DNA of 64,000 nucleotides from Blastocystis sp. Blastoise (GCA_039096225.1 JBBPEB010000025.1:496001-560000); one strand, 5' to 3'. Shown: positions 36,716-58,534, counted from the stretch's first letter. A program made the numbers and translations. The notes: generated by a model not told the origin, from the letters alone.

Positions 36716-39700
36716 TTAGATTTGGACTTCATCCTTAGGAGCAGTAGTAGTAGTAGTAGAAGTAGTAGTAGCAGGAGGAGGAGTATTTACAGCAGCAGGA
36801 GCTGGTGGAGGAGCATTAGTAGCAGGAACAGCAGTAACAGCTACAGTAGCAGGTGCAACAGCAGCAGCAGCTTCTTTCTTAGCTTTAGCAGTAGCATTCT
36901 TATTAACTTTAGATAACTTAGGTTTCTTAGCATTAATCTTCTTTTGTTTGTTAATAAAGAAGAAGACAATACCAGCAATAATAATGATAACTACAACAAC
37001 AATAAGAATAATAGCCCAAACAGGGAAAACGAAAATACATTTCATAGTTTCAAGATCACATTTACCACTTTGACAATCAGTATCAACAAGACAATTCTTC
37101 TCATTAGGACAAGGAGAACAAGTACTACCACCACAATCTATATCTGTTTCTAATCCATTTTGTACATTATCTGTACATAAAGGACCATTATTAACAGGTT
37201 CAGAATTAACAGTAACACTAGAAGCAGTAATACCTTGTTGAACTAAAGCAGCAACAAATGAACCATCACTAAAACTATTAGTTAATAAAGTAGCACTTTC
37301 AGCAGCTGTATCTTTAGGAACATTAACACGAACATCAAATTCTACTTGATTTTGATAAATAGAAGCCTTTAAATAAGAAGTAGTAGTTGAACTAGTAACA
37401 CGAATATCATAACAACATTTCATAGACATGACATGAGCAATAGCTAATTTAATACTTTGAATATTTTCTTCACTAACAGGAGCAGAAATACCACTAATAG
37501 TAAATTTAGTTAAAATAACACTCATAGAATCATCAGCAGCTTCATTAGGATTTTCACCAGTAATAATATCTAAAGTACCACAATTTTGATTTTTATAATT
37601 AATATCACAAGTACAACTAGCAGTCTTAGTAATAAGACTAGCAGAACAACTACCATGATTACTACATTCAACTAAAGGATCAAAAGTAGTACTAGGACAA
37701 GTAGTACAACCAGCTTCAGGATAATAACCAGCAGAAATACATGTACAACCATTAGCAGTACATTCACCAAGATTTGTTCTCATATTACAATTATGTGGAC
37801 AAACAGCATTATAAGGATTTGTAAATGTTACTTGAGAAAGATTAGGTATAGTTTCACTATTAAATTTAAATGAAACAGAAATAGTTTGATAATCAATATT
37901 ACCATCAATAATAGGAGTAGTATAAGTATATCTAAATATACCAGTACTAGATTTACTAAATACACCATCAGTTATAGAATTAAATGATAATGGTAAACTC
38001 CAATCAACAGCAAATGCACTTGAATAATCAGTAGGATCAGTAGGATTATTATATAGATCATAAGTATGGAATTCAAAGAAAGAAGAAGTCTTTTGTTGAA
38101 CATTTATTGATCCAGTATAAGTAATCTTAGAAGCAGCTGTAGTAGAAGCAATAACAGAAATAGAAGTAAAAGGACTATGATTAATATGTGTATTAGTAAC
38201 AGTACCACAAGATGCTTGAATAGTTAATGTATAACTACCAGCAGATTCAGGTGTACATGAAATAGTAATAATACCATTTTGAGTTAATTGACCAATAGTA
38301 ACAGGAATAGTACTAGGACCAACCATAGTAGCAGTAATAGATAAATCACTTAAAGAACTACCACCTAAAACCATATTAGTTAAAGAAGTAATATCTTCAT
38401 CATTACTATTCTTTAAATGTATTTCCCATATAGCAGTAGCACCAGCAACTAAATTAGATGTAATAAGACCATTACTTACAGAAGTACCAGTTAAATAGAA
38501 TTTACTAATATCAGCAGCATATAAAGTAGTAAAAGAATATTCACCAGAATTTAATCCTTGATAAGGAGCACCACTAGTAGAACTTAAACAATTAGCAGGA
38601 ATAACTAAATTATAAGTACCAGGAGTTAATATAGAAGTAGGAGTAATAGTAACAACAGTATTATCAACAACAACTTGAGTACTAGTAACATCAATATTAA
38701 TAGTAGTAGGACCAACAAATTGAATAGAACCAGTACCTTTTTGCATAGCTTGACTAAATGTTAATATAATAACAACACCTGAAGGAACAAGATTAGGAGT
38801 ACCAGTAGGAGGAGATATATTAGAAATAGTAGGGAATGAAGGAGTAGAAAATACTAACATATATTGAGTATTACCTATATCATAATTATTTTGTACTAAT
38901 CCTGATGGTATATCTAATGTATAAGTAGAACCATTTTCTAATGTAGTACCAGTAGATAAAGAAATAGTTAAAGTATTACCATTAATTTGACAATTACCAT
39001 CAGTAATAGAATAAGTAATAGTTGGTTTACCAGAAGCAGTAAATGAAATAGATCCTGTACCAGCAACAATAGTAGAAGAGAATGTAAATACAAATACTTT
39101 ATTAATAGAAACATTAGAAGCATTATTACTTGGATCTGAACTACTTACAATAGGAGCAGAAGCAGTATGATAAGTAAATATACCTACAGTATTCTTAACA
39201 CCTTTAATATCAGTAACTAAATCAGCAGGAATAGAAACATAATATTGAGAATTAGCAGTTAAATTTTCTGTAAAACTAAATTGTACTTCTTTAGGATTAC
39301 TAGTACTAATAGTACCAACAGTAGTAATAGTATTTGTACCAGCAATAGTAACACTATTAGTAGTACTTAAACTAGCAATATCTCTATTAAATGTTAAAGT
39401 AATAACAAAATTTAATTTTAAGTTTTCAGAAGATTCAACAGGAGATACAGTATAAGTAAGAGCAGAAGGAGTTGATATAGTATAATCAGTAACAGCATTA
39501 CAAGGAATATTACTTTCTTTAGAAACAACTATACCTTCAGGAAGTGTAACAGTATAAGTTAAACCAGTAAGAAGAGAAGGAGTAATAATTAAAGTTTTTT
39601 CATCTTCAGAAATAGTAACAACAGGATTCATAACATCAATAGTAATAGCATTACCAGAAGAAGGAGTAAAAACAATAGAACCAGAATTCTTTTGAATAGC

Positions 39701-42700
39701 TATATTATAAGTAATTTGAATAGGTTCATTTATAGCAATATCAATAGCACCATTAATAGGAGAATAAGAAGAAACAATTGGTTGAACAACAGTAGTAAAA
39801 GTATATTCACCAGCAGCAATACCATTATAAGCTATATTACTAGTAGTTTCAGTAAATACACCACTAGGGATAATAACATTATATAAAGTAGAAGATATTA
39901 AATTAGAATACACAATAGTAACAATATTGGATTGAATAACAACATAAAGAGAACTAATACTAATATCATCTTGATCTTGAGCTCTTAATATAATATTACC
40001 AGTACCATATTGAACAGGCATATCAAAAGTTAATTCTATATTACCATTAAGAGGAACATTAATACTATTAGAAGCAGGAACACGAGTACTAAGAGAAGGA
40101 GCAGAAGCAGCACTTGTAGTAAATTTATATTCACCAGCAGTTAATCCTGTATATATATTAGAAGCCATATCCATAACTAATCCACTAGCTATACTTAAAG
40201 TATATTCTTTTTCAGGAGAGAATAAAGAATTCTTATTAATAACAACAGTTTTCTTATCTTCAGAAAGACTAATACCAGTTCTATCAACAGTAATAGCATT
40301 ACAAGTATTTGTACCAATACACATAAATTGTACATTAAAAGTATTACCAAATTGAATAGTTTCACTAAATGTTAATTGAATAACAGCATCTAATTGTATA
40401 TCAATACTATTATGAGCAGGAGAATAAGATTGAATAGAAGGAGGTACACAATCAACAGTAATATCATAAGTAGTTTCTTCATTACAATTATTAAATGTAT
40501 CACATATCTTATCAGAAAGTAATTTAATAGTAAGAGTATTATAACCAGTAGGAGTAATAGTAAATGCAGCAATAGCAGTAGTAGAAGTTAATAATTGAGT
40601 ACTAACACAAGTAATAGTAGAACTAGTTTCAAAAGCATCACAAGATATAGAACTAACTTCTTTATTAAAACTAAGATTAATAGCATAAGAAGTAGCACAA
40701 GTAGCACCTTCAGCAACAGGAGTAATAGTAATAATAGGTTTAACATCATCTTTCATAATAATTAAACTATTAGAAGTTGAAGTACCATAAGTATTAGTAG
40801 CTTTAACAGTATATACACCAAAATCAGTAGAAGTTAATACTTTAGAATAAGTAGTAGAAATAGCACCTTCAATAGGTAAATTATCTAAATACCATTGATA
40901 AGTAGCAACTGGAACAGCAGTAACAACAACTTGAAGTGATATAGTAAAACCAATATTACTATTTAATGTAGAAGGTAAATCAGTAGTAAAAGTAGGTAAT
41001 CCACACATACTACAAGCAACATGGAAATTATATTGAGAACTAGTAAAACCATTAAAATATTTATTAGTAGTAGTATCAATAAAGAAATAAGAAGGAATAA
41101 CTAAAGTATATGTTCTATCACCAATTAAAGATTGAGAAATTCTAAAAATAACACTAGAACCATCAAATTCAATTAAACTACTATTAGCATCATAAACAAT
41201 ACTACTTTCAGTACCACTAGAAAATATAGCAGAACCAGAACCTCTTGAAGGAGTACTATCAAATGTTATACGAATAGTTTGAGTATTAGCAGGTACATCA
41301 ACTTTACCATTAATAGGAGTAATACTAGTAATAGTCATAACTTGAGGACTATAAGTAATAGTTAATAAATTAGATTCAGCATTATCTATATCACCAGCAC
41401 CTTTAACACTATTAGCATTTACTTTAACAGAACCAGTAATAGTATTACTAGAAGGATTAGAAAAAGTATATATAGCATTCCAAATCATACCACTACCAGT
41501 AACACTAGAAATAGTACCAGCAGTAGAAGTAAAAGAATCAATAGTTAATCCAGTAATATCAGCATCAAATGTAATAGTAATAGGAACAGTTGTACTAGAA
41601 ACAGGCATATAATAAGAAGTAGAAATAGTAGGTAAAGGAACAGCATAATCACTCTTATAAACAAATGAACCACCATTAAAAGAAGTAATAGCATTTCCAG
41701 CAATATCATAATACATAGTAGTACCCATAGATACACGTACATAAACAAATGAAGAAGATTCTATTTGTATTTTAAATGAAAAAGCAGTATTAGTAGGTGT
41801 ATCAGGAATAGGAATAAATGAATTAGAAACTACATTACCACCAGTAATAGCTAAAATACCTTGATCAACATATGCCATTTCTTCAGAGAAATATAATTCA
41901 CCATTAACAATAGGTGTATTTACAGTACCAGTAGGTAAAGATACATAAGCATTAGGTTCAGTAGAATCTAAACCAATAGTAAAAACATTAGATTCTTGAG
42001 AAGGTTTATTATCAGATAAAGAAAGAGCAAATCCAGCCTTCAGTCTTATAGTAGCAGTAAAATCTAAATAACCAAATTGAATATTAATTGTATTACTAGG
42101 ATTTGTATTACTAAGTGCATTTATACAACGTAAACCATTAGCAGCAATATATACTTTGACACTAGATACAGAACTAGAAGGAGTAACTTTAAATGTATAT
42201 TTAAGTGAATGAACTTTAGTAATTTCACTAATAGTAGCACCTTCAACTGTAATAGCACTTTCAGGAAGATTATTAATAGGTTTAGAAGAAGAAAGAGTAA
42301 TAATAGCATAAGGATCAGTTACTTTATTTAATCCATTATAAGGAGAAGATAATTCATAAGTAGGAATATCAATATCTTCAATATATAAATAACTATTAGG
42401 TATAATTTGTTTTGTAATACTAGCATCAGTAGATTCCCATTCTAATTGTAATTTACTAGTAGCACTATTACTTCTATAACGTATAGTAATAGGAAGTAAG
42501 CCAGTAGTAAGAGAAGCAGTAAAAGTATTAATCTTTTCACCACATTCAGTAACTTCTAATTGAGTAACACCATTAAAAATAACTATAGCTACACCATTAG
42601 TAGTAAGAGTAAATGTATAAGAACCAGTAACAGGTATTTGTAAATGTGTAGTAAAAACAGAATAGAAATTAGCAGGTAAAGTAACAGAAGAAGAGAAAGA

Positions 42701-45545
42701 AGTAGTATCAGAAGCAACAAAATCAAAATTAAATTCATCAGGATATTGATTAGCACTAACATAATTACTACCACCACTATTTGTACCAGCATTCATTATA
42801 GAAGAACTAGGCCAATCACAAGTATTATCATCATCAAGATTAGTATAATAAGCATTAATACCATGTTTATTACCTAAACCAATCTTAACATTATCTTTTA
42901 CATTATTACCTTGAGGATCATATATATTAATAATACATGAAAAACCACCACCACCATTACCAAATAATACTATAATTTTATGTTCACCAGCAACTAAATC
43001 AACAGAAGTCTTTACTTCATTTGGACCACAGAAAGTATAATAAACAATATTATTATTCATATCAAAACTATCTATTAATACCATAAGAACATCATCTTGA
43101 GTAACACCAATTTGATAAGTACCAGAAGTAGTAGCAGTAAATATACCACTATGATATTGAATCATACCTTCATAAGTAGAATAAGGAATATTACCATAAT
43201 TACCAGCATTATTACTATTACCTACAATATTTAAGGATGAATAATATAAATTAAATGTTGGATTCATAGATCTATAAGCAGATATAGGTGTAGGTAAAGA
43301 ACTAATAGCAGTACTAAAATGTCTAAATGCTTTTGTATACCAACCAGTAATATCAAAAGAAACACTTCCAGAAACACAAGCATCATTACAAGTAAATGTA
43401 TCATGATTACAATATACAGGATTTACTTTAACATTACCATCACATAAACAATAACCAGAAGAAGATGAAGGTACTAATGCAGAACAAGATAAATCTAAGG
43501 AAGGATCTAAAGTACCATAAGGACTACATGTAGAAGTACCTTTAAATCCTATACAACCAATAGAACGAGTAGTAGTAGCACTAATAACATTATTAGCCAT
43601 TTCTTCTTGAGTAATAACACCATTACCACCTTGTTCAAAATACATATATACTTTATAACTTTGATCAGAAGCTAAACCATGAACAGATAATGTATTTATA
43701 ATATTAGAATGAATAGCATAAGAAGCAGAAGAAGCTTTCACTTGATCTATAGTAGGAATAGCACTATTACTAAAATAAGCAGCTACATAAGCATATAAAT
43801 TAGCATCTTCTACACCAGTAATTTTCATTTTAATATCAATAGAAGAAGGATTAGGAGTTACAGAATCAACAGTTACAGTAACAATAGGATCAATAGGGAA
43901 ATTATCAGCTAAAGCAAACATTTCAGCATCTTGTAAATATTTATGATAAACACGTAAAAATTTTATAGTCATATCATTCAATGTACCAAATTCACTATTC
44001 TTCCAGAATACCCAAGTATTTGGTTGAAGAGGAGCATATGTATCATCAATAACATATTCGAAAATATTAGCTTTATCTAAATAAAGATGTGTCACATGAT
44101 CAGAGACTCTATGATTGAAACCAATATAATGAATAGTACCATCATTTATATTTTTAGTATTAATACTATATTTATAAGCAGCAGCTTTATTTAAATAATG
44201 CCATCTAGCTTTATTGGCAGCAACTAATTGACATCTAGAACCACTAGTAAAAGCAGAAGGATAAGGTTGTGTACAGAAAATAGGACCACTAGCACCAGTA
44301 CCAATAATACCAAAATGATAAGAATAATCACTATCAGCACGAGAAGAAACCCAGAAATGTTCATAATCATACATAGTATTACCATTAGAAGTACTCATAG
44401 GCATAATTGTTTCAAAATCAGAATGATAAGTAATTTTCATATTTTCCATAATATTTTGAGCAGTTTTAATATCACCTACTTTAGAAGCACAATAAATAAC
44501 ATTAGTACCAACAGCAGAAGGAACATCAAGAATAATTCTATTCAGAGTAATAGCAGAATTACCAGTAAATCCAGAAAGATCAATTTCAGTAGTACTAGCT
44601 AAAACTTCATCTACAGTAGGTACAGTAGTACCTTCAGGAATACTCTTACAACCAATAGTAACACCAGTAGCAGGATAATGAGCATATACATAAGCTTTTA
44701 CATTAGTTTCAGAAACAACTAATTGTTGAATACCCATACCTGTATCATTAGGTTGTGTACCTTTATATTGAGTTAATTCAGTTTCACCAATAATAGTATT
44801 AGGAAAAGCAACTACATTAGCAAATGCACCATGAAGTAAATCAGGAACAGGATCTGTTGCACCAGAACGAGAATATTTCATATAACCTAAAGATACTTTC
44901 TGACTAGTAGTAGGAGCAGGAAGAGTATTAAAAGCATTAGATGTCATTTCAGCAGATGTTAAACACTATAATATATCAATTTATTATAAATTTATTGTTA
45001 AAAAAATAATAATAATTAATTAATAAAAAAATAATATTAAATAATTTATAAAAAAATATTTATAAATATTTACAAGAGTATCATCTACATAAATCTTAAG
45101 ATCATTTGTATTCTTAGTATATATAATTCTCCAATGTCTCCAAGTACCATCAGCAACATTAGCACAAACACCAGTCTCAGAACCTTGTACTTCAACAAGT
45201 AATCCACGAGCTTCAGCATAAACTTTACCGTTCTTAATACCGATAAAACGATCACCACTTCCAGAAGCATATTCGTTATCATTAGTTAAAGCAAAAAGAA
45301 TACCAAAACGACTAGTACTTTCCTTATCAGGATTAGGAATAGCACGTATCCAAGAAATCAAAGAAAAATCATTAGAAAAATCAAGTTTCCAAGAGGACTC
45401 AACATAGGTTTCACCAGGCTTGTAAGAATCAAAAGAAATGTAATCTCCCCAATTCTCGACAGCTTGGGTCAATACTATACAAATTATTAGACATAGATTG
45501 ATCAAAGAACTTACCTAACAAGATTAATAAATAAACAAATTTCAT
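36716..45545 (-). CDS. ~2893-aa adhesin-like type-I membrane protein (LamG/ConA-like x2, Cys-rich module, PA14 x2, bacterial Ig-like SbsA/Big repeats, I-set Ig, filamin-like, EGF, SEA-like, CxDxxxNGxETDxDCGG module, TM)
   Basis: Exons 45545-45515, 45474-45074 and 44965-36716 splice in frame (8682 nt). Signal peptide MKFVYLLILLVLTQA; LamG ADGTWRHWRIIY; PA14 GIFTATTSGTYQIGVTQDDV; repeats PSIQSYSPAHNSIDIQLDAVIQLTFSETI; TM VWAIILIVVVVIIIIAGIVFFF. Confidence 0.9.
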
Positions 45546-45715: not shown

Positions 45716-46899
45716 TATCGTGGATCTTTGTTTTATTCTTTTTATTAGTGTTTTATTGTCCAAAACAAAGAAATAGAGAAGAACATAAACCGAATAGAGT
45801 CATGGCGTCACTTGTTTTGAAAGTTCTTTATTTTCCGCTAAACACCGAGACATCATCAGAAAACTCTTTAAGAAATAGATGTGTCATCAATAGTTAACCC
45901 TATTCTTTTCTATTCTATATGGGTACCCTAATGAAAATCGAGTTTTATTTTTTCGTTTTTCTTTGTCTCTTTTTAAAGTATACGAAATATTTATAATAAA
46001 GAAATGAATATTATTATGCTTAGGAGACTCATAATGTGCTTATCTTTGGGTATATTGGACTAATAATCAATTCTATTTTATCATGATTATAATTCACTAC
46101 TGTGTACTTTTAACAGTTTAAAATATATTAGTCACAATTTCTTGATGTATCATTTAATTGATTCGTTTAAAAAGTCTAATGTTTTATAGCAATTACGAAA
46201 TAAAGCAAAACAAAATGGTTATAAATACAAAGTCTTCTAATAGGGTAATCGTTATTTCACTCAAAAATGAGAAAAATAGTCGTTTATCCGTGTTTATTCA
46301 ATAAATTTTGCGGAACAAACAATTATCCCCGTTTTCATACGAGAGTCTACGGGATTAACTTATATTCTTTATAATTTTACATTTTTAGTGAGATATATAG
46401 AAAACACTAGAGTATTAATATATATTATGCTTATTTTTTTATATATAACTATTTTTATTGTAAAAATTATACTAATGAATGTGAAATGACTGCTATAAAC
46501 ATTTTTGCTAATAGAGTTTATGGAAATAAGTGCATTGAAAGTTTTGATTACATTATTAAAAGATGATTACCTATTTAGATGGTGTGAGTATGCCTAAAAG
46601 ATCAATCAAAGATTATTAAAAGTATTTTTATAAATATAGACTACTTCATTCACGAATTAGTTCCATGATCTCTGTAGAGTCATAGTTTAAGTTATTTAAC
46701 TAGTTAGAAAGATGTATATTACATATTTAAGTATGTTCTGAATGCGAAAAAGTGTTTTATGAATAAAAGCCAGCAATGAATTACATCATTCTGTAGACAG
46801 TTATATACTATAATTGATTACTACTTTTGATCCCTATGAATCATGATAAAGATGAAACAAACAACATAATATATTATAACGACTTATTAAGAGAGATAT

Positions 46900-49010
46900 A
46901 AGCGTTTTAGTTTATGATTGAAATATTTTTTTAAATATATGTATATATAGGGATGTCTATATAAAATAGTTATTTAAACATAATTGATATCGAATAAATG
47001 TGTATTTATATATTATATAATATATGATATCATATATTCTATAAATAGATCAACAATATATATTATATGATATAAATAATAATAAGATAATAATCTATAA
47101 TACAATATGATTACTATATAGTATATGCTATATAATATATAATAGAAAGCAATCTATATATATTATATTCTATAATAGAATGTAGTTTTATAGTAAATTT
47201 TAATATATAATATACTATAGAAAAAGTGTTAAGGTATGTAAAAAGGATGAAAATAAATATTATATATATATATATAATACTTACATAGAATAGAATAAGC
47301 TGAACAATCCCATAGTAGTTTTTATCACTAATGATATATAACTATATAAATAATAATATAAAAGAAGCATATTCCAATCAAGATAAAGCTGCTATACAAT
47401 ATATTATAATTGATAATCAATAATATATAATAGATGAAATAGAAAAAGTAATTAAATAGAATAGAAAGATTTAATAAAAAAGTACTATATAACTTAGAGC
47501 ATTATATATAATAGAGTACAATAATAAAGTATAATATAAGAGATAATATACTATAGAGTAAGAAGTAATATAAGAAAATAATATATGATGTAATAGAATA
47601 TAATATAGATTATAAAAGATAAAACAATAGAATATAAACGAAAATATAATTGATATTAGATAGTATAATAGGTAATATATAATATAATTAATGGATAATA
47701 TATAATACTAACTATATATAATATAATAAAAGATAGATAATATATATTATAATATATAATCTGAATTATAAAATATAATATACTAAATTATTTACTATAT
47801 AATATAATACAATATATAATAGTGTATTACATACTTAATTAGTTAAATTAAATAATATATAATACTATACTATACTATATCCTATAAAATAGTATAATAT
47901 ATATATAATGTTATAACTAATAATATATAATATATACTGCACCATATAATACATATATATATTAACTATATAATGTATAATACTAACCAATAATATAATA
48001 AATAATATTATATTGTACTAACTATAGTCTATATAATATATAATACTCTCTAATATTACCTAACTATATAGAATACTAGACTATATAGCATTATATATTA
48101 TATATTATAATACAATAATAAATATGTATTATAATATATATAATATATAATACTATATATATCATAAAACACTAGATTAGTATAATATAATATATAATGC
48201 TAACTATATAATATAATATAATATAGTATAGTATATGTAATATAGTACTATACTATACTATATACTATATAACATAATACTATATAATACTGTATTATAT
48301 ACATATATATAATAATACTACATACTATATAATATACTACATATATAATATAATGTACATTATACACCATATACTATATGATATATAAACTATATTTTAG
48401 TATCATGCCATACTATATTATTATATATACTATACTACCTTATATAGTCATATAATATAATACTATATAATATAGTGCTGTACTATAGTATACTAGATGA
48501 TACAATTCTATAAGATACTATACTAGTATATATATATATTGTATATTATATCATATATATCTATAATATATCTAATATAATATATCTAATAAAATATTAT
48601 ACTATACTTTATAATATAATGGTATATATTATATAGTATATAGTACCATACTATACTACACTATATAATATATACTATACTATATAATACTGTATTCTAT
48701 ATACTGTATAATATATAATATACTACATATATTATATTATATATATTATATTATATATACTATATGATATATAATGCTCTTCAGTATAATGCTATACTAT
48801 ACTATATAATACAATGTTGTATTATAGTATACAATATGATATAATATTATATGATACTATACTAATATATAGATATATATATCTAATACCATAGAGAATA
48901 CTATTTATTATATCATATATATTATATTATACTATATAATATGTAATATATATCATATACATCTAATATTATACTATACTATAATATGTAATATATATCT
49001 ATATAATATA
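46900..49010. repeat. TA-rich cryptic/degenerate satellite domain (TATAC/TATAG/ATACTATAT micro-motifs)
   Basis: No ORF. Especially over ~47.7-49.0 kb it is mostly alternating T/A with interspersed single C or G and has few long A/T homopolymers, unlike other intergenic DNA in the window. Confidence 0.7.
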
Positions 49011-49014
49011 TATA

Positions 49015-49255
49015 TATAATATAATATAATATATATATAATATAATATATATATAATATAATATATATATAATATAATATATATATAATATAATATATAT
49101 ATAATATAATATATATATAATATAATATATATATAATATAATATATATATAATATAATATATATATAATATAATATATATATAATATAATATATATATAA
49201 TATAATATATATATAATATAATATATATAATATAATATATATAATATATATATAA
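49015..49255. repeat. (ATAATATAATATATAT)n 16-mer tandem array
   Basis: About 14 near-perfect copies seen directly. Confidence 0.9.
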
Positions 49256-49285
49256 TATAATAAAAAAACAATATAAAAAACAAAA

Positions 49286-49358
49286 GATTTAAGCCAGGAA
49301 TTGAACCTGTATATACATATATACATATATATATCTCCATCCGTTATGGAGCTTAAAT
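49286..49358 (-). ncRNA. tRNA-like cloverleaf (mascRNA-like; no canonical anticodon arm)
   Basis: Minus strand reads ATTTAAGC TCCAT AACGG ATGGA G ATATATATAT GTAT ATATGTATAT A CAGG TTCAATT CCTG GCTTAAAT C, then TTTTGTTTTTT. This gives an 8-bp acceptor stem, a D-arm with GG, an AU hairpin and a T-arm with a canonical TTCAATT loop. Confidence 0.75.
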
Positions 49359-51830
49359 ATAATGAATAAGAGTACTAATAACTGAATAGAGAGTATAGGA
49401 AGAAGAATAGAAATAGTACTAATAACACCATATACTGTACCAGAGCATAGATAATAGATGGAGAAACTAATACCATAATCAAAGCTACTATATATAGTAA
49501 AATAGAATGATATGAATATATAAACACATATCAAGATAAAGTATATACATATATATAGAAATTAATATAGAGGAAATATATATCGAAACATATACGTATA
49601 TATAAAGAGCTATAGAGACAATAGATATATATATATACTAGTAATAGTAAGTAAATAATGTAAAAAAAGATAATAATACTATAAACAACAGTGCTCATAT
49701 ATAAATAGATATAGAAACATAATATATAGATGAATATAGGTATATATTCATATAAAACAGATATATATATATATAATCATGCATATACATAAAAAAAAAA
49801 TTAATAACAATAGAAAGATAAATATAACTAACACAAAATGATATAAATAGGAAACAAGATATAATACAAATATGAAGACAATGAATATAATATATACATA
49901 AACCAAAATATGGTCCATATGACAAAGAGTAATCCAAGCCAATCAATAAGATTGAAGAGAGACACAAAGAGACAAAATCATGACTGAAGAGAAAGAAATT
50001 ACTAAAAAATAGAAACAATAATATATATATAAATCAACAAGAGGAAAGCTTATTTGAAGATAATATAATAATAATAATAGACTAGAGAGTAAATAAAACG
50101 AATAGAAAGATTTAAAAAAAAAAGGAAAAACAGAATAAAAGATATATTAATAGTAATATATATATATATACAGAACACTAGTTAACCAATTTGAAGAGAA
50201 CAGATAGGAACACATCAAACAAACAGATTCAAATAATAGAAAACAGACTATATAATAGAATAATAATAAATAATATAATAATATAAAGAAACGAAAGAAT
50301 AGCATATATATATAGAAAAGCAACTAAAAGACCAGTAATACAATAAGAAAGATAATAATAACAGATAAAAGGAAGAAAACGATATAATAACGTAATAATA
50401 GAATGAAATATATATATACCTAGAAATAGAGCCATATAATCAATCTATAGGAAAAAGGCCACAGAAAGCCACAAGAAAGAACCACCAGAGTGGAAGAAGC
50501 ACAAGAAATGCTAGATTAATAGAATAATAGATATATTAATAGATAAAAAGAAATAGATATAGCAATATATATATATATATATATATATATACCTAAACAA
50601 CATAAATAATACATCTGAAGGAAAATACCACCAATAGCATATATACAGAAAGCAAGGAATCACTATAATAGAATATATAGATAGAAATATAATATAATAA
50701 AGAAAGCAGAAGCTAAATATTAATAACAGTAAATATATACATATATATAAGAATAGAAGCAAACCAATAAGGAACCATTAAATAACCAACAGCATGAAAA
50801 CAGCAATAATAAATGCAATAAACCTATATATAAATATATTTAAACTAAAAACAATATATTATGTAGATTAATTAATATAAATGGTATAAAGCAGTATAAT
50901 ATATAATAGAAATATGTAAATATAAACAAATATACACATATAATAATAAAATTAAACATATATAAAGAAATAAATGCATAATATAATCAAAAAAAGATAT
51001 ATAGAATAGATAAAGATAAATATAATAAAGAAAATTAAATTAAATATTATATATATATACATACCTAAAACACACAAGAAATTAATTAAATCTCTCTTTA
51101 ATAGCATCAGGAGACCATAAGCTGTTCAAAGAAACCATTAGCTAACAATAGAAGAAAAGAAGCAGGAAGAATGAAGATGATCATCGTCTTGTCAATCATC
51201 TATACTATATATAAATAATATATATAAGAGAAATAAGTGATAATAAATATATTTAAACACATATATATTAATATAAACGTAAATAAGAGATAAAAAACGA
51301 ATAAAAAGAAAAGAAAAATGAATAAATAAAAACATACGGAAAAACCATCAAGAAGAAAGGAGACATCATTTGAGTGCCATAGGCAAGTCATAAGGAGCCA
51401 TACCTGTTAGAAGACCATTAATAAAAGAAGAAAAGAAGAACGTAGCCCATGATGAGTCAATTAACCCTTAGACTAGATAAAAAATGTAATAAAAACAATA
51501 TAAAATATATGTATATACCTCGTAACATATTCTCAACGCACGAGTACCAACAGGGAAGGACAAGAAACGGAGATGACCAATCAGGACAGTAGCAAGACTT
51601 TCTATATATACAAGTAATAGTAAATGGATAGTTAATATAGAATATATACCTTTCAGAACGTTTTGAACAACTTCGACAGGAATTGCGATTTTGACGATTG
51701 GAGCGACCAGAAGACCTGAAAATGAACCAGCTAGGAGATATAGAATAGATAAATGAATAACATACGGAAATAAACCAAAAAGACGACTTCTTACAGGCAC
51801 ACAAGATAAATAAAATATGAGATTTGAAAT
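49359..51830 (-). ncRNA. Putative multi-exon spliced long non-coding RNA
   Basis: GT-AG introns in this genome's style at 51731-51765, 51602-51649, 51473-51518, 51200-51337, 50824-51064, 50663-50740, 50511-50592, 50248-50419 and 50082-50171. The joined exons are U-rich, have stops in all frames and contain no long ATG ORF. Confidence 0.55.
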
Positions 51831-53649
51831 CTGTTTTTGGTGGCAATGCAGGATTAGGCCGCGTAAACGAGAATCATGTTTATTTAAAAGATCTCGTGAT
51901 TATCTTAATGAAATTCACGACTATGCGAAATTCATTTTTGATCATCTTCAGATAGTGTGTTGTTTTAAGTTTATATGTGTTTTTGAGTATAAATAATGAC
52001 TTGAGATGAAAAATGATGTGGTGAAGTTGTTTTAATTAAACTTTTAATAGAATGAAAAGTCACTGATCTGCCATAAAAGTCTTTAAAACAGAGATTTTAT
52101 TGTAATTTATGCTATAATAGAGCATTTAATAACAGAAAATGCAGTTTAACTCAGTTCAATACCACAAACTAAGACTTTTTTAAAATGACTCTTATTTATA
52201 GTTTATTATGTTATTTTTCACTCATTTAAAGCATTTATGACTCGTAGAGATAGAAATGAAACTTTTATAAAAGACAATTAATTCTGACAATTCTTTGAAA
52301 TTATGATATAGAGCATATTGATCATATACACAACCTTTAAAGCCTTATAATAGTCATAATCACTTATAATATACTCATAAATAACAACAATGACTGACAT
52401 AATTGCATTTCTTTGTTGATTCACTCTTTTATTACTTTATAGTTAAATATGACCTCATTATATAATGTTACATCACATATTGCATAGACACGACCCGGAA
52501 AAAATTTCAGAAAAAATTCTTAAAAGACACATTTTGGCGATGCAAATTTTGAAAATTGTCAAAAAGCATATTTAAAAGTCTCTATGGATTCATTATAGAA
52601 TATAGATTATATATATATCATTTATAATGCATAAAAAACAATATAAGGGTATTAAATAGCCTCTCGAAATTCATACAATTGTGTCTCATTTCGAACTTCG
52701 TTAAGAACTTTTACTATATTTTCCTCTAAACTTCTCTTTAATCCTTATATAGTATAATTAACAACATATTATTAATATAGAGTGTCTATTATATAAAAAT
52801 AACTCAAGATAAGTCGAAAATTCGACTAGTCATTTTACGATTATGGCGAAATTTCGGACTTTGAGATGTTTTTCTGAGTTTATAGGGGTCCAGGAATGCT
52901 GCTATGGGGTCAAAACATGCAAAATGCAATTTAGTAGAAATTATTTTTTTGAAAACCCAGAAGCCCCAGAAGCTCCTACGAAAAGCATTCGTTTTTTTCG
53001 TTTTTTTCTTTGCCAAAAATGTGAGTGGGGGCTTTACTCACAGAATGGCTATTTGACTATATATTCTTAATCTAGAGACTATAAGGATGTCAAATATGTA
53101 TATATTAATTGAATCAAAAATCATTTATAATTAGATTATTATAACATGTGTTAAAAACTTGATTTGACTGTTAATTATTAATATAGAGGTCATACATATA
53201 GTTTATATACATTTATTAATAGTTTTCAATAGGTCTATAAAATCAGATGTTAATGGGGTCAATGAAAACTATTTTTGAACTTTCCTTTGGGAGTTTCTAT
53301 GTATATAGCGGGTCATATACAAGATCTTAGATGTCATTTATTTATATAAGCTGAGATCTAAAATATATGGAAAATAGCCTAACTCGTCGCAAAACGGGAA
53401 AAAAACACTCTTGGGGAAAAATATATATCTAATCACGGATATCACTCAAATAAATCTAGTTTTGAGTGAAATAACGATGACCCCTTCTAATAACTGGAAA
53501 AAACCCATAAAAATAGGTTGTTTGATTGGATTCACTTTTTCTTGATTTTCCTTTTCTTTTATGGACTGAATTTATTTTTTTTCACAAATAAAAAATATTA
53601 ACAAGAATCATTAAATTTTTGGCAATTTGTTAGCAGTTATTCATTCAAA

Positions 53650-56657: not shown

Positions 56658-58534
56658 ATGGCAGTTTCTAAAAAGCATTTCATGTTCATGTTGATTGCTT
56701 CTTTCTGTTCAATGATTACACAAGGTCTATTGGATAACGTGAAGTCAGTCACATTACCTCTATTACAAACAGAGTTTCAAGCTTCTGATGATCAGTATGG
56801 TATCTTGGCTTCTATGGTGAATTTAGGATATGTACTATTTGCTTTCGCTTCATCATATGTCGTACGTCCATGGGGATTTAAAGCTACAATGATTGTAGCA
56901 ATGACAGGTGGAGCTTTAAGTTGTATTATGATGGCTTATGTTCCTTCTTTTTCTTGGGCTATTGTTTTTCAGTTGATTGGTGGAATAGGATTAGGAGCTA
57001 CTGATCTGCCTCCTGATATCCTAGGAACATTAATTTTTGGAAATAAAATGGCATTTTATATGACTCTTCTGAATGCATTTTATGGTGTTGGTGGTTTATT
57101 TAGTCCATTCTTAGCTACTTATTCTGTCAACTGGTATCCTTATGGTTATAAATCCATTTATTTATATACAATGGTTCCAATTATTCTGATGATTATCTAT
57201 GTGATGTGTGTTCCTTTTGCTGTAAATAATATGGACAGTGTAGATAAAGAAAGTGAAGATATTGAAAAGAAACAATCTCATAGAAATTCTTCAATAAACT
57301 CCCTTGATCATCGATCAAGTATAGACTCAATTGATACAAAGAAAAAAATAAGCGATTCAGATATTCATAATGATCAGACTGTAGTTGGCGAAGATTCAGG
57401 TAATATATATTTAGTATATTTATTGTGTTTATATGTTTATTATTTATTGATATAATAATTTATATACTATTGTATTTTATATATTAAAATATTATAAATA
57501 TATATTTATTGTTATAAGCATATTATAATTTATTTATTATTTTCTGCTGCTATTTCTCTTCCTTTAACATATAATAAACATAATAATAATAATAATAACA
57601 TATATATATAGATTCTGCTTCATCTCCTGTATCTATTGGAAATCCTACAATAACACAACAAGAGATTTTATCTTCTAATCCTTCTGATAATGCTATTATT
57701 CATATAACCGATAATACTATAGTTCATGACTCGAATATAATAAAGAATTCACAATTAGAAGAGGATAATGTATTATATATGCCTCGTTGTTTATCTCCTT
57801 CTATTGATGAAACTTCTATAAAAAATGATATAAACACAAATTCAAATCCTTCTTCAAGAAAGCAATCCATACAATCATATACATCTCAAACACAAACAAT
57901 TATCCACGAATCATGGTTTAGAAAGTTAAAGAAACATCCAATGGTTGATGCCCTTTGTACTCCTACTATGTATTTATTTTCAATTACATTAACAATGACA
58001 ACTATGGTTGAAAGAGCTAATATAAATTGGTCTACTATATATATAGATAAAGTTTTAGGATTAGATCCGGTTCAAGTAGGTGGTCTCTTTAATAGTTTAT
58101 TCTTTATGTTATATACTATAGTACGTTTTTTTGGAGGATATATAACAGATAAATTAGGAAATTTACCTACAATGTATGGATGCTTAATTATTACTATTCT
58201 GATGTTACTGATTGGTTATTTTACAGAAGTTGTAGGATTATGGATTATTTGTGCTTCTAGTATATTTATATGTTTATTTTGGCCAACGATGATATGCTTA
58301 GCAAATGAATATTTTGAAGAGAAAGGACCAACTATAGTTAGTGTAATGTTACCTTTTCAATCTGTTCTTTCAGCAGTATTTCAGCCATTCTTAGGATGGA
58401 TGAATGGAGAGTTTGGTCCTGCTTCTGCTTTTCGATTTACTATTGTTTTTGGTATTTTAGCTTTATTATTACTTATTTGGGATACATTATTAATTGTTAA
58501 AAAAAGAAAACTATCTAAAATAATTGCTATTTAA
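56658..58534 (+). CDS. Major facilitator superfamily transporter (FucP/TsgA/MFSD4-like), 2 exons, long central loop
   Basis: Two hydrophobic 6-TM halves; motifs LLNAFYGVGGLFSP, ERANINWSTIY and RFFGGYITDKLG. Intron 57400-57611 keeps the frame. Confidence 0.88.

Follow-up and report, generated by a model that had tools for sequence, protein, structure and literature searches.

A transposon-borne family of tRNA-shaped elements in Blastocystis and its possible role in RNA processing

Results

Host transposon and neighboring genes

We analyzed a 64-kb window of the Blastocystis sp. Blastoise genome (the whole stretch of 64,000 nt, with positions counted from its first letter). Within it, a 7,241-bp DNA transposon carries a tRNA-like cloverleaf on the minus strand (Table 1). 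Alignments of this host element with two further copies had sharp ends, and the window element was 93% identical to the copy at L009 and 91% identical to the copy at L010 over 7.1 kb. These two copies were flanked by 9-bp duplications of their own (GTTTTTTCC and CAAAAATTT, respectively). The host element ends in GGGTAATCGTT, and genome-wide such ends marked three complete and about two partial copies. We found no open reading frame (ORF) longer than 130 amino acids and no Pfam domain in the element, so it encodes no transposase. MULE transposase domains were matched 28 times in the genome, and none of these matches adjoined host-element ends. Mutator-like elements typically make target-site duplications (TSDs) of 9 bp, with a range of 8–11 bp. 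Because its own duplication is 9 bp, the host element is probably a non-autonomous, Mutator-like DNA transposon, with the superfamily assigned by TSD length alone. Downstream of the cloverleaf, the element is filled by 1.7 kb of TA satellite.

The transposon shares its orientation with a giant adhesin gene and lies ~0.7–1.3 kb upstream of it. The encoded surface protein contains seven bacterial Big_5 Ig-like domains together with Big_12, PA14, filamin-like and Ig domains; EGF-like repeats and a transmembrane end were apparent by reading the sequence.

Table 1. Coordinates of the cloverleaf, its host transposon, neighboring features and related arrangements on other contigs (C numbers). TIR, terminal inverted repeat.
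Feature	Position	Strand	Details or basis
Giant single-exon surface protein gene	36716–45505	−	2,743 aa
TSD, left copy	46234–46242		CTTCTAATA, 9 bp
Host element, DNA transposon	46243–53483	.	Sharp-ended alignments, TIR, TSD
Left TIR	46243–46266	+	GGGTAATCGTTATTTCACTCAAAA; 23/24 match reverse complement of right end
TA-rich satellite	47566–49262	.	16-nt unit, ~103 copies; Tandem Repeats Finder
T-runs directly 3' of discriminator	49262–49285	−	T4 49285–49282, T6 49280–49275, T7 49268–49262
tRNA-like cloverleaf, type A	49286–49358	−	Sequence, MFE fold, family model R1
Acceptor	49358–49351 and 49294–49287	−	ATTTAAG(C)/(G)CTTAAAT
Acceptor 5' strand	49358–49352	−	C8 at 49351
D arm	49350–49336	−	TCCAT-AACGG-ATGGA; G at 49335 next
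(AU)n hairpin in anticodon-arm place	49334–49311	−	(AU)n stretch broken by two G
T arm	49310–49294	−	ACAGG-TTCAATT-CCTGG; stem CAGG/CCTG 49309–49295; T-loop 49305–49299
Acceptor 3' strand	49293–49287	−	CTTAAAT; discriminator C at 49286
Direct repeat, 12 nt	49415–49426 and 49371–49382	−	GTTATTAGTACT
T-rich, G-poor low-complexity tract upstream of cloverleaf	49359–51100	−	Composition
Conserved leader of module	51100–52100	−	Alignment across host repeats
Right TIR	53460–53483	−	24 nt
TSD, right copy	53484–53492		CTTCTAATA, 9 bp
MFS transporter gene	56658–58534	+	Intron ~57400–57612 (GTAATAT...TATAG)
Type D then type C pair	C1:132935–133003 and C1:137253–137319	+
Type D/type C, same spacing	C6:12709/16932, C10:1977/6161, C11:15193/19513, C14:137147/141370, C16:1151992/1156216, C31:514590/518911
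MULE ORF to type I	C8:23982 to 40258; C13:1285511 to 1301784; C14:1316345 to 1332616; C20:55491 to 71766
MULE ORF to type I	C31:614933 to 598889; C23:134815 to 118768	−

Sequence and fold of the cloverleaf

RNAfold returned the cloverleaf as both the minimum free energy (MFE) and the centroid structure (−20.4 kcal/mol, z = −2.9), and an equally good fold arose in one of 200 shuffles. The predicted stems were an 8-bp acceptor, a 5-bp D stem with a 5-nt loop ending in GG and a 4-bp T stem with a 7-nt loop, so that the acceptor/T stack measures 12 bp; a 10-bp AU hairpin with a 4-nt loop stands in place of the anticodon arm. The preliminary description of this locus had reported a 73-nt minus-strand cloverleaf, and all of its features were confirmed in the sequence and in both predicted structures. 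Sequence and fold likewise supported its reading as a non-decoding tRNA mimic. It retains a 12-bp acceptor/T stack, a T-loop and the GG of the D-loop, the features read by RNase P, RNase Z and the CCA-adding enzyme. Diverged copies show this fold again, with compensatory changes, and we take the window fold to be more than chance.

No CCA is encoded in the genome after 49286. The B box, GGTTCAATTCC, is intact in the window cloverleaf, and in the A-box region ~3–5 of the specified positions of TRGCNNAGTGG could be read from the sequence. Upstream of the cloverleaf is a short direct repeat (Table 1), of which only the proximal copy (TTATTAGTAC...) is common to other A-type lineages.

Comparison with known tRNA and RNA families

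ARAGORN found no tRNAs in the 64-kb window, and an Rfam cmscan of the whole window gave no match at the gathering score. On the 451 nt from 49100 to 49550, neither the Rfam tRNA model nor the mascRNA-menRNA model gave a match at E ≤ 10. The Rfam tRNA model also gave no match to the better-formed type C relative described below. The best 63 matches to the Rfam tRNA model in the genome were ordinary tRNAs located elsewhere, and none of these 63 coincided with a match of the family studied here. A canonical tRNA gene has a 7-nt anticodon loop, U8, N9 and a variable region. The window element, which no detector matched and which has an (AU)n hairpin with a 4-nt loop as its arm, is not such a gene.

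The element had also been likened to the mascRNA found at the end of vertebrate MALAT1. In MALAT1, a U-rich triple-helix element (ENE) and a genomically encoded A-rich tract lie directly upstream of mascRNA and can stabilize the cut 3' end. By inspection, the 150 nt upstream of the window cloverleaf are T/C-rich and contain no A-rich tract and no U-rich triple-helix element. Together with the missing covariance model match (RF01684), even at E ≤ 10, this spoke against membership in the mascRNA-menRNA family.

A genome-wide family of tRNA-shaped elements

We searched the 33.34-Mb assembly (34 contigs; GC ~16–33% in the window's 2-kb stretches) for related elements. A 111-nt query around the cloverleaf was found by BLAST at 27 places in the 33.3-Mb assembly, at 77–100% identity, and the family as a whole comprises ~300 tRNA-shaped elements genome-wide. 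The T-arm core AGGTTCNANTCCT occurs 350 times in the genome versus 7 times for a reversed control. Nearly all of these occurrences read AGGTTCAATTCCT; the real tRNAs of the genome read TTCGAAT. A covariance model made from types A, B and C had at least 150 matches in the genome, and pattern matches divided the family into at least nine sequence types.

Members of the family share several odd features. The acceptor has 7 bp, position 8 is a C (or U) that pairs into a short D arm, the loop of that arm ends in GG, there is no variable loop, and the T arm is almost invariant. An anticodon-like arm with a 7–8-bp stem is found across types; in types A and B it is an (AU)n hairpin, whose length ranges from ~12 to ~60 nt among copies. 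The window cloverleaf has the features of family model R1 (7-bp acceptor, C/U8 paired into a short D arm, no variable loop, D-loop ending GG) as well as its T-arm pattern, (T)CAGG-TTCAAYT-CCTG(A). With filters off, it matched this model with 83.4 bits; in the whole-genome R1 search the window, L009 and L010 sites each scored 83.4 bits, and a search with default filters left out these three copies. A model search with filters off found no second cloverleaf in the 7,241-bp element. Positions 51024–51063 were masked or skipped in that search, in R1 scoring, in the host-repeat alignment and in the tandem-repeat search. One metagenome scan for relatives gave a single chance match (L028) with no cloverleaf.

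Several arrangements of family members recur. In a repeat near contig ends, cloverleaves of types A1 and B stand in tandem ~110 nt apart with T-runs between them (L018 and L020–L026, on C13, C14, C17, C25, C26 and C31; 17–23 kb and ~40 kb from contig ends). This repeat is at least 7.8 kb long, has no ORFs, is 95–99.9% identical between chromosome ends and shows a sharp boundary at L023:7913. The tandem occupies a fixed place 17–23 kb from at least six contig ends and always points inwards. At many loci, a type D cloverleaf is followed 4.2–4.3 kb later by a type C cloverleaf in the same orientation (Table 1). The tract before type C is strongly pyrimidine-rich (Y = 0.74–0.82), and a 295-aa "ORF" before one type C copy proved to be an artefact of such a pyrimidine tract. 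If both the D and the C cloverleaf were cut, the RNA of the tract would be freed at both ends, as in tRNA punctuation.

At no fewer than six loci, a MULE transposase ORF is followed on its own strand by a type I cloverleaf, at a constant distance of 16.0–16.3 kb (Table 1). We therefore infer that giant Mutator elements also carry a family member. Separately, the small contigs C9 and C12 hold the same AT-rich, canonical tRNA set in mirrored order (e.g., C9:1940–2011 and C12:17018–17089), and probably represent the organelle (MRO) genome, which would have been assembled twice or in two orientations. The T-loops of these tRNAs, TTCAACT and TTCAAGT, are closer to that of the mimic than is the nuclear TTCGAAT.

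The upstream module

Upstream of the cloverleaf on the sense strand are a T-rich tract and, beyond it, a conserved leader. The sense strand of the tract is 55% T and 9% G over its proximal 1 kb, and the tract holds low-complexity pseudo-ORFs only. Between copies its length varies from ~0.4 to 2.2 kb, and unlike the leader and the cloverleaf it could not be aligned between host repeats. In every type, the 1 kb upstream of the cloverleaf is pyrimidine-rich on the sense strand (0.58–0.82 versus 0.48 for the whole window, in 23 of 24 copies), with the exception of the truncated copy L011 (0.54).

The leader is ~71% identical over 1 kb to the subtelomeric repeat at L023. Leader homologues were found at 15 places, always upstream of A-type cloverleaves. 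Apart from the leader, the subtelomeric repeats that bear it share with the 7.2-kb element only the cloverleaf and its near flanks. A seven-way alignment showed exon-like blocks in the leader, with the motifs GGTATAT (5' splice-like) and TATAG/CTAG (3' splice-like) conserved at their boundaries. These motifs resemble the one real window intron that was checked, GTAATAT...TATAG; it belongs to the MFS transporter gene (Table 1), the only local example of real splice signals.

No Pfam match was found in the leader. We considered a protein-coding leader, in that its blocks translate alike between copies, but the blocks contain indels of +2, −1, +1 and −1 nt. Because these are not multiples of three, the leader is probably non-coding. 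Two pseudo-ORFs of the module had no exact protein on record.

Conservation of base pairing

Acceptor stems differed in sequence, yet all of them pair: ATTTAAG/CTTAAAT, CTTTATG/CATAAAG, TCTTATA/TATAAGA, ACTTAAG/CTTAAGT, CCTTAAG/CTTAAGG and CCTTAGA/TCTAAGG. The D stem is CTCCAT/ATGGAG in type A versus TTCTAT/ATAGAA in type B, two types that have an acceptor in common. The fifth T-stem pair, which lies outside the B box, is T-A or A-T among types, and the long anticodon-like arm varies from AAACAATC/GATTGTTT through TTACAATC/GATTGTAA to GCTATC/GATAGC. In the counted alignment, which was fitted to the model and includes two weak rows that are probably chance, 97% of cells paired and four acceptor pairs changed on both sides. 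None of 500 shuffles reached the alignment's values, and slid controls paired in 9–57% of cells. Types D to I, which were read from pattern matches, were left out of the alignment and the pair counts. Folded individually, types A, A1, A2 and C each had the cloverleaf as their own MFE structure; it was absent from the MFE structure of type B because the all-A/U acceptor of that type is too weak.

Among six A-type lineages, the two halves of the cloverleaf were 0.93 and 0.91 identical versus 0.55–0.73 for the flanks. In these lineages, the D-loop GG and the whole 5' half were conserved to the same degree as the B box. The (AU)n arm varies in length, as would be expected if the function depended on the acceptor/T stack and the elbow but on no particular arm length. 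Within the 7.2-kb element family there was no signal of selection, the cloverleaf being no better conserved than its flanks. These copies taken alone show none because they are too young; that is, their flanks are also 93–100% identical. Two A-type copies are decaying (L013:4912–4986 and L014:4963–5037): both have a C to A change in the T stem (AAAGG), and L014 also has a disrupted acceptor 3' strand (CTTTTAT). Thus, individual insertions drift once fixed.

Part of the covariation between types could reflect founders derived from different tRNAs. We favor one founder with later compensatory evolution, because of shared derived features and compensations within types. Features that count against separate tRNA founders are C8, the lack of a variable loop, the 8-bp anticodon-like stem and the identical T arm. 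We concluded that the window cloverleaf is very probably a member of a transposon-borne family under structural selection.

Discussion

Proposed role of the cloverleaf

RNase P, RNase Z and the CCA-adding enzyme recognize the acceptor/T stack, the T-loop and the elbow formed with the D-loop GG. The family keeps the acceptor/T stack, coaxial and 12 bp long, a T-loop containing T54 and A58, and the D-loop GG, together with a fourth arm of arbitrary length. Because the parts kept by selection are those that these enzymes read, we favor a signal that would act at the level of RNA. Our main reading is that the type A cloverleaf may be an RNase P/RNase Z/CCA signal closing a non-coding module that travels as transposon cargo, and we give it a probability of about 0.45. 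For its components, we hold that processing of the cloverleaf by tRNA-maturation enzymes has slightly better than an even chance, and that the chance of the cloverleaf defining the 3' end of the upstream transcript is somewhat less than even.

The module runs, on the minus strand, from the 1-kb leader with its splice-like signals through the T-rich tract and the cloverleaf to the T-runs. We propose that it would be transcribed, and presumably spliced, and that the cloverleaf RNA would fold into a tRNA-like L-shape. Cleavage by RNase P would then separate 49359 from 49358 at the cloverleaf's 5' edge, and RNase Z would cleave 3' of the discriminator (49286), probably with subsequent addition of CCA. 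The upstream RNA would thus end without polyadenylation, and a tRNA-like RNA of ~72 nt would be released. The main argument that the cloverleaf may end a transcription unit, as opposed to standing alone, is that leader and cloverleaf are conserved together in unrelated host repeats.

As to the polymerase, a Pol II transcript of the whole module is suggested by the weak A box and the co-conserved leader, whereas the B box, the T-runs and the tandem A1–B arrangement would favor Pol III. We tentatively prefer the Pol II transcript as the substrate, at rather less than even odds, over a short Pol III transcript, which we judge less likely still.

The preliminary description had placed the cloverleaf at the 3' end of a spliced non-coding transcript. 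One part of this interpretation stood: the unit that the cloverleaf ends is conserved and apparently non-coding, and unrelated host repeats retain its splice-like signals. The idea of a single host lncRNA locus did not stand: the unit is cargo of a 7.2-kb TIR transposon, with ~27 close and ~300 distant copies. The likening to mascRNA was therefore right on shape and possibly on mechanism, and wrong on uniqueness and family membership.

Alternative explanations

A serious rival, which we regard as rather unlikely, is a stand-alone Pol III gene. TFIIIC would bind the B box, transcription would start just upstream of 49358 and stop at the T-runs, and a small tRNA-like RNA would be made, with the leader and tract as unrelated neighbors that happen to travel along. 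The ends of the elements suit such a gene, since a run of T4 or longer follows within ~10 nt of the cloverleaf in 12/12 aligned A-type copies, strong T5–T7 runs follow types C and E, and the genome's genuine tRNA genes end likewise; however, types D, F and I lack a T4 run in the 15 nt that follow. Of the two internal promoter boxes, GGTTCAATTCC is near-invariant in ~300 copies, whereas the A-box region is poor, with ~3–5 specified positions of TRGCNNAGTGG. The tandem A1 and B elements, ~110 nt apart with T-runs between, look like separate small genes, and acceptor covariation would also be expected of a processed Pol III product. A self-contained gene needs no leader, yet the leader 0.4–2 kb upstream is co-conserved across unrelated host repeats, and pyrimidine bias marks the upstream sense strand in every type.

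The B box might instead act in the DNA, by recruiting TFIIIC without productive transcription (an ETC-type site) and so serving as a chromatin boundary or a Pol II roadblock for the transposon or subtelomere. Binding of TFIIIC needs no base pairing, yet covariation is seen in the stems of the acceptor, the D arm and the anticodon-like arm as well as in the fifth T-stem pair. Of all parts the B box varies least, but the D-loop GG and the entire 5' half match it in conservation. The positions of some copies would fit a boundary, in that the tandem A1+B copies sit 17–23 kb from at least six contig ends, always pointing inwards, and the window element lies a short way (~0.7–1.3 kb) upstream of the giant adhesin gene in the same orientation. 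We consider this weaker alternative improbable.

We think it quite improbable that the cloverleaf is a functionless relic. In that case a repeat would have picked up a tRNA pseudogene, an (AT)n microsatellite would have overrun the anticodon arm, and the hosts would have copied the whole passively. Compensatory double changes in the D and acceptor stems, one architecture kept in ~300 copies of many sequence types, and identities between lineages of 0.91–0.93 in the cloverleaf versus 0.55–0.73 in the flanks all count against it. A relic would account for the length-variable microsatellite in the anticodon arm, for the visible decay of several copies (e.g., L013 and L014) and for a cloverleaf no better conserved than its flanks within the 7.2-kb element family. 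Finally, the locus could be one host lncRNA gene whose 3' end is of the MALAT1/NEAT1 type and is either homologous to mascRNA or its direct analogue. The layout, a long, non-coding-looking unit ending at a non-decoding cloverleaf, resembles this, but such a gene is most improbable given that the whole unit is multi-copy and lies inside a TIR/TSD-bounded transposon, that no Rfam mascRNA-menRNA match was found at E ≤ 10, and that there is no ENE or A-rich tract.

Significance

The genome paper on tortoise Blastocystis (PMC12129017) reported 5.6–7.5% transposable elements and 12% low-complexity DNA, and tRNA is never mentioned in its text. Because that paper never mentions tRNA-like elements, the family of tRNA mimics appears to be undescribed in print. 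The window cloverleaf is not a unique lncRNA locus, and the functional role given to it here is a proposal drawn from sequence. To our knowledge, tRNA-like processing signals of nuclear long RNAs are known essentially from two vertebrate lncRNAs. Other classic tRNA-like cases are the t-elements of plant mitochondria and viral tRNA-like structures. If the main reading is true, ~300 structurally selected mimics in transposons would mean that mobile elements can adopt and spread host tRNA-maturation signals, and the family would be a naturally occurring set of minimal substrates for RNase P and RNase Z in which the fourth arm is dispensable.

A wider scenario, which we find doubtful, is that several DNA-transposon superfamilies in this stramenopile share a module that would make a spliced leader joined to a long U-rich RNA, whose 3' end would be formed by RNase P at the tRNA mimic and not by polyadenylation. 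The MALAT1/NEAT1 mechanism would then have been invented independently and spread by mobile elements, and the anticodon arm of type A would have turned into a freely expanding (AU)n hairpin.

Comparison with known systems

The host element resembles non-autonomous Mutator-like or Pack-MULE-like elements in its TIRs, its 9-bp TSDs in three copies and its lack of a transposase. It is unlike Pack-MULE-like carriers in that its cargo is an RNA-like module, not a fragment of a host gene.

A tRNA-derived SINE is a unit of ~100–500 bp with target duplications and a 3' tail of its own that disperses alone. The preliminary description had named recognition as part of such a SINE as an outcome that would count against it, and this is borne out in part, the family being a multi-copy, tRNA-derived repeat. 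Like tRNA-derived SINEs and Pol III tRNA-like genes, it has a conserved B box, with T-runs downstream here. It is not a SINE unit: no duplication flanks the cloverleaf, there is no tail of its own, and the copies seen sit within larger repeats. Unlike a SINE, the segment shared between contexts is a 1.7–2.9-kb module of leader, tract and cloverleaf, found in DNA transposons and subtelomeric repeats. The A box is weak, and the stems covary, which those of SINE heads need not do.

TFIIIC-bound ETC sites and tDNA boundary elements likewise have a conserved B box away from a real tRNA gene, and some copies of the family hold fixed subtelomeric positions. The family differs from ETC B-box sites in its conserved pairing at the RNA level, which a protein-DNA site does not explain.

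The closest resemblance in layout is to the mascRNA and menRNA of MALAT1 and NEAT1, the sole lncRNAs known to use the tRNA-processing machinery (PMC12941219). In both systems, a long and apparently non-coding unit ends in a cloverleaf that decodes nothing and in which the acceptor/T stack and the T-loop are intact and the anticodon arm is crippled. The mechanism proposed here is also the same, with RNase P forming the upstream 3' end and RNase Z plus CCA addition forming the small RNA. The Blastocystis mimic is unlike mascRNA and menRNA in having no Rfam sequence or structure match and no upstream triple-helix or A-rich element. It also differs in its hundreds of copies, its place as transposon cargo, its stramenopile host and its (AU)n microsatellite arm.

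The closest functional analogue is found in the t-elements of plant mitochondria, non-decoding tRNA-like signals for RNase P and RNase Z that set the 5' and 3' ends of other RNAs (PMC1920247). Like them, the Blastocystis mimic has a tRNA-like structure that decodes nothing. Plant mitochondrial t-elements differ in being organellar, few in number and not carried as cargo of mobile elements.
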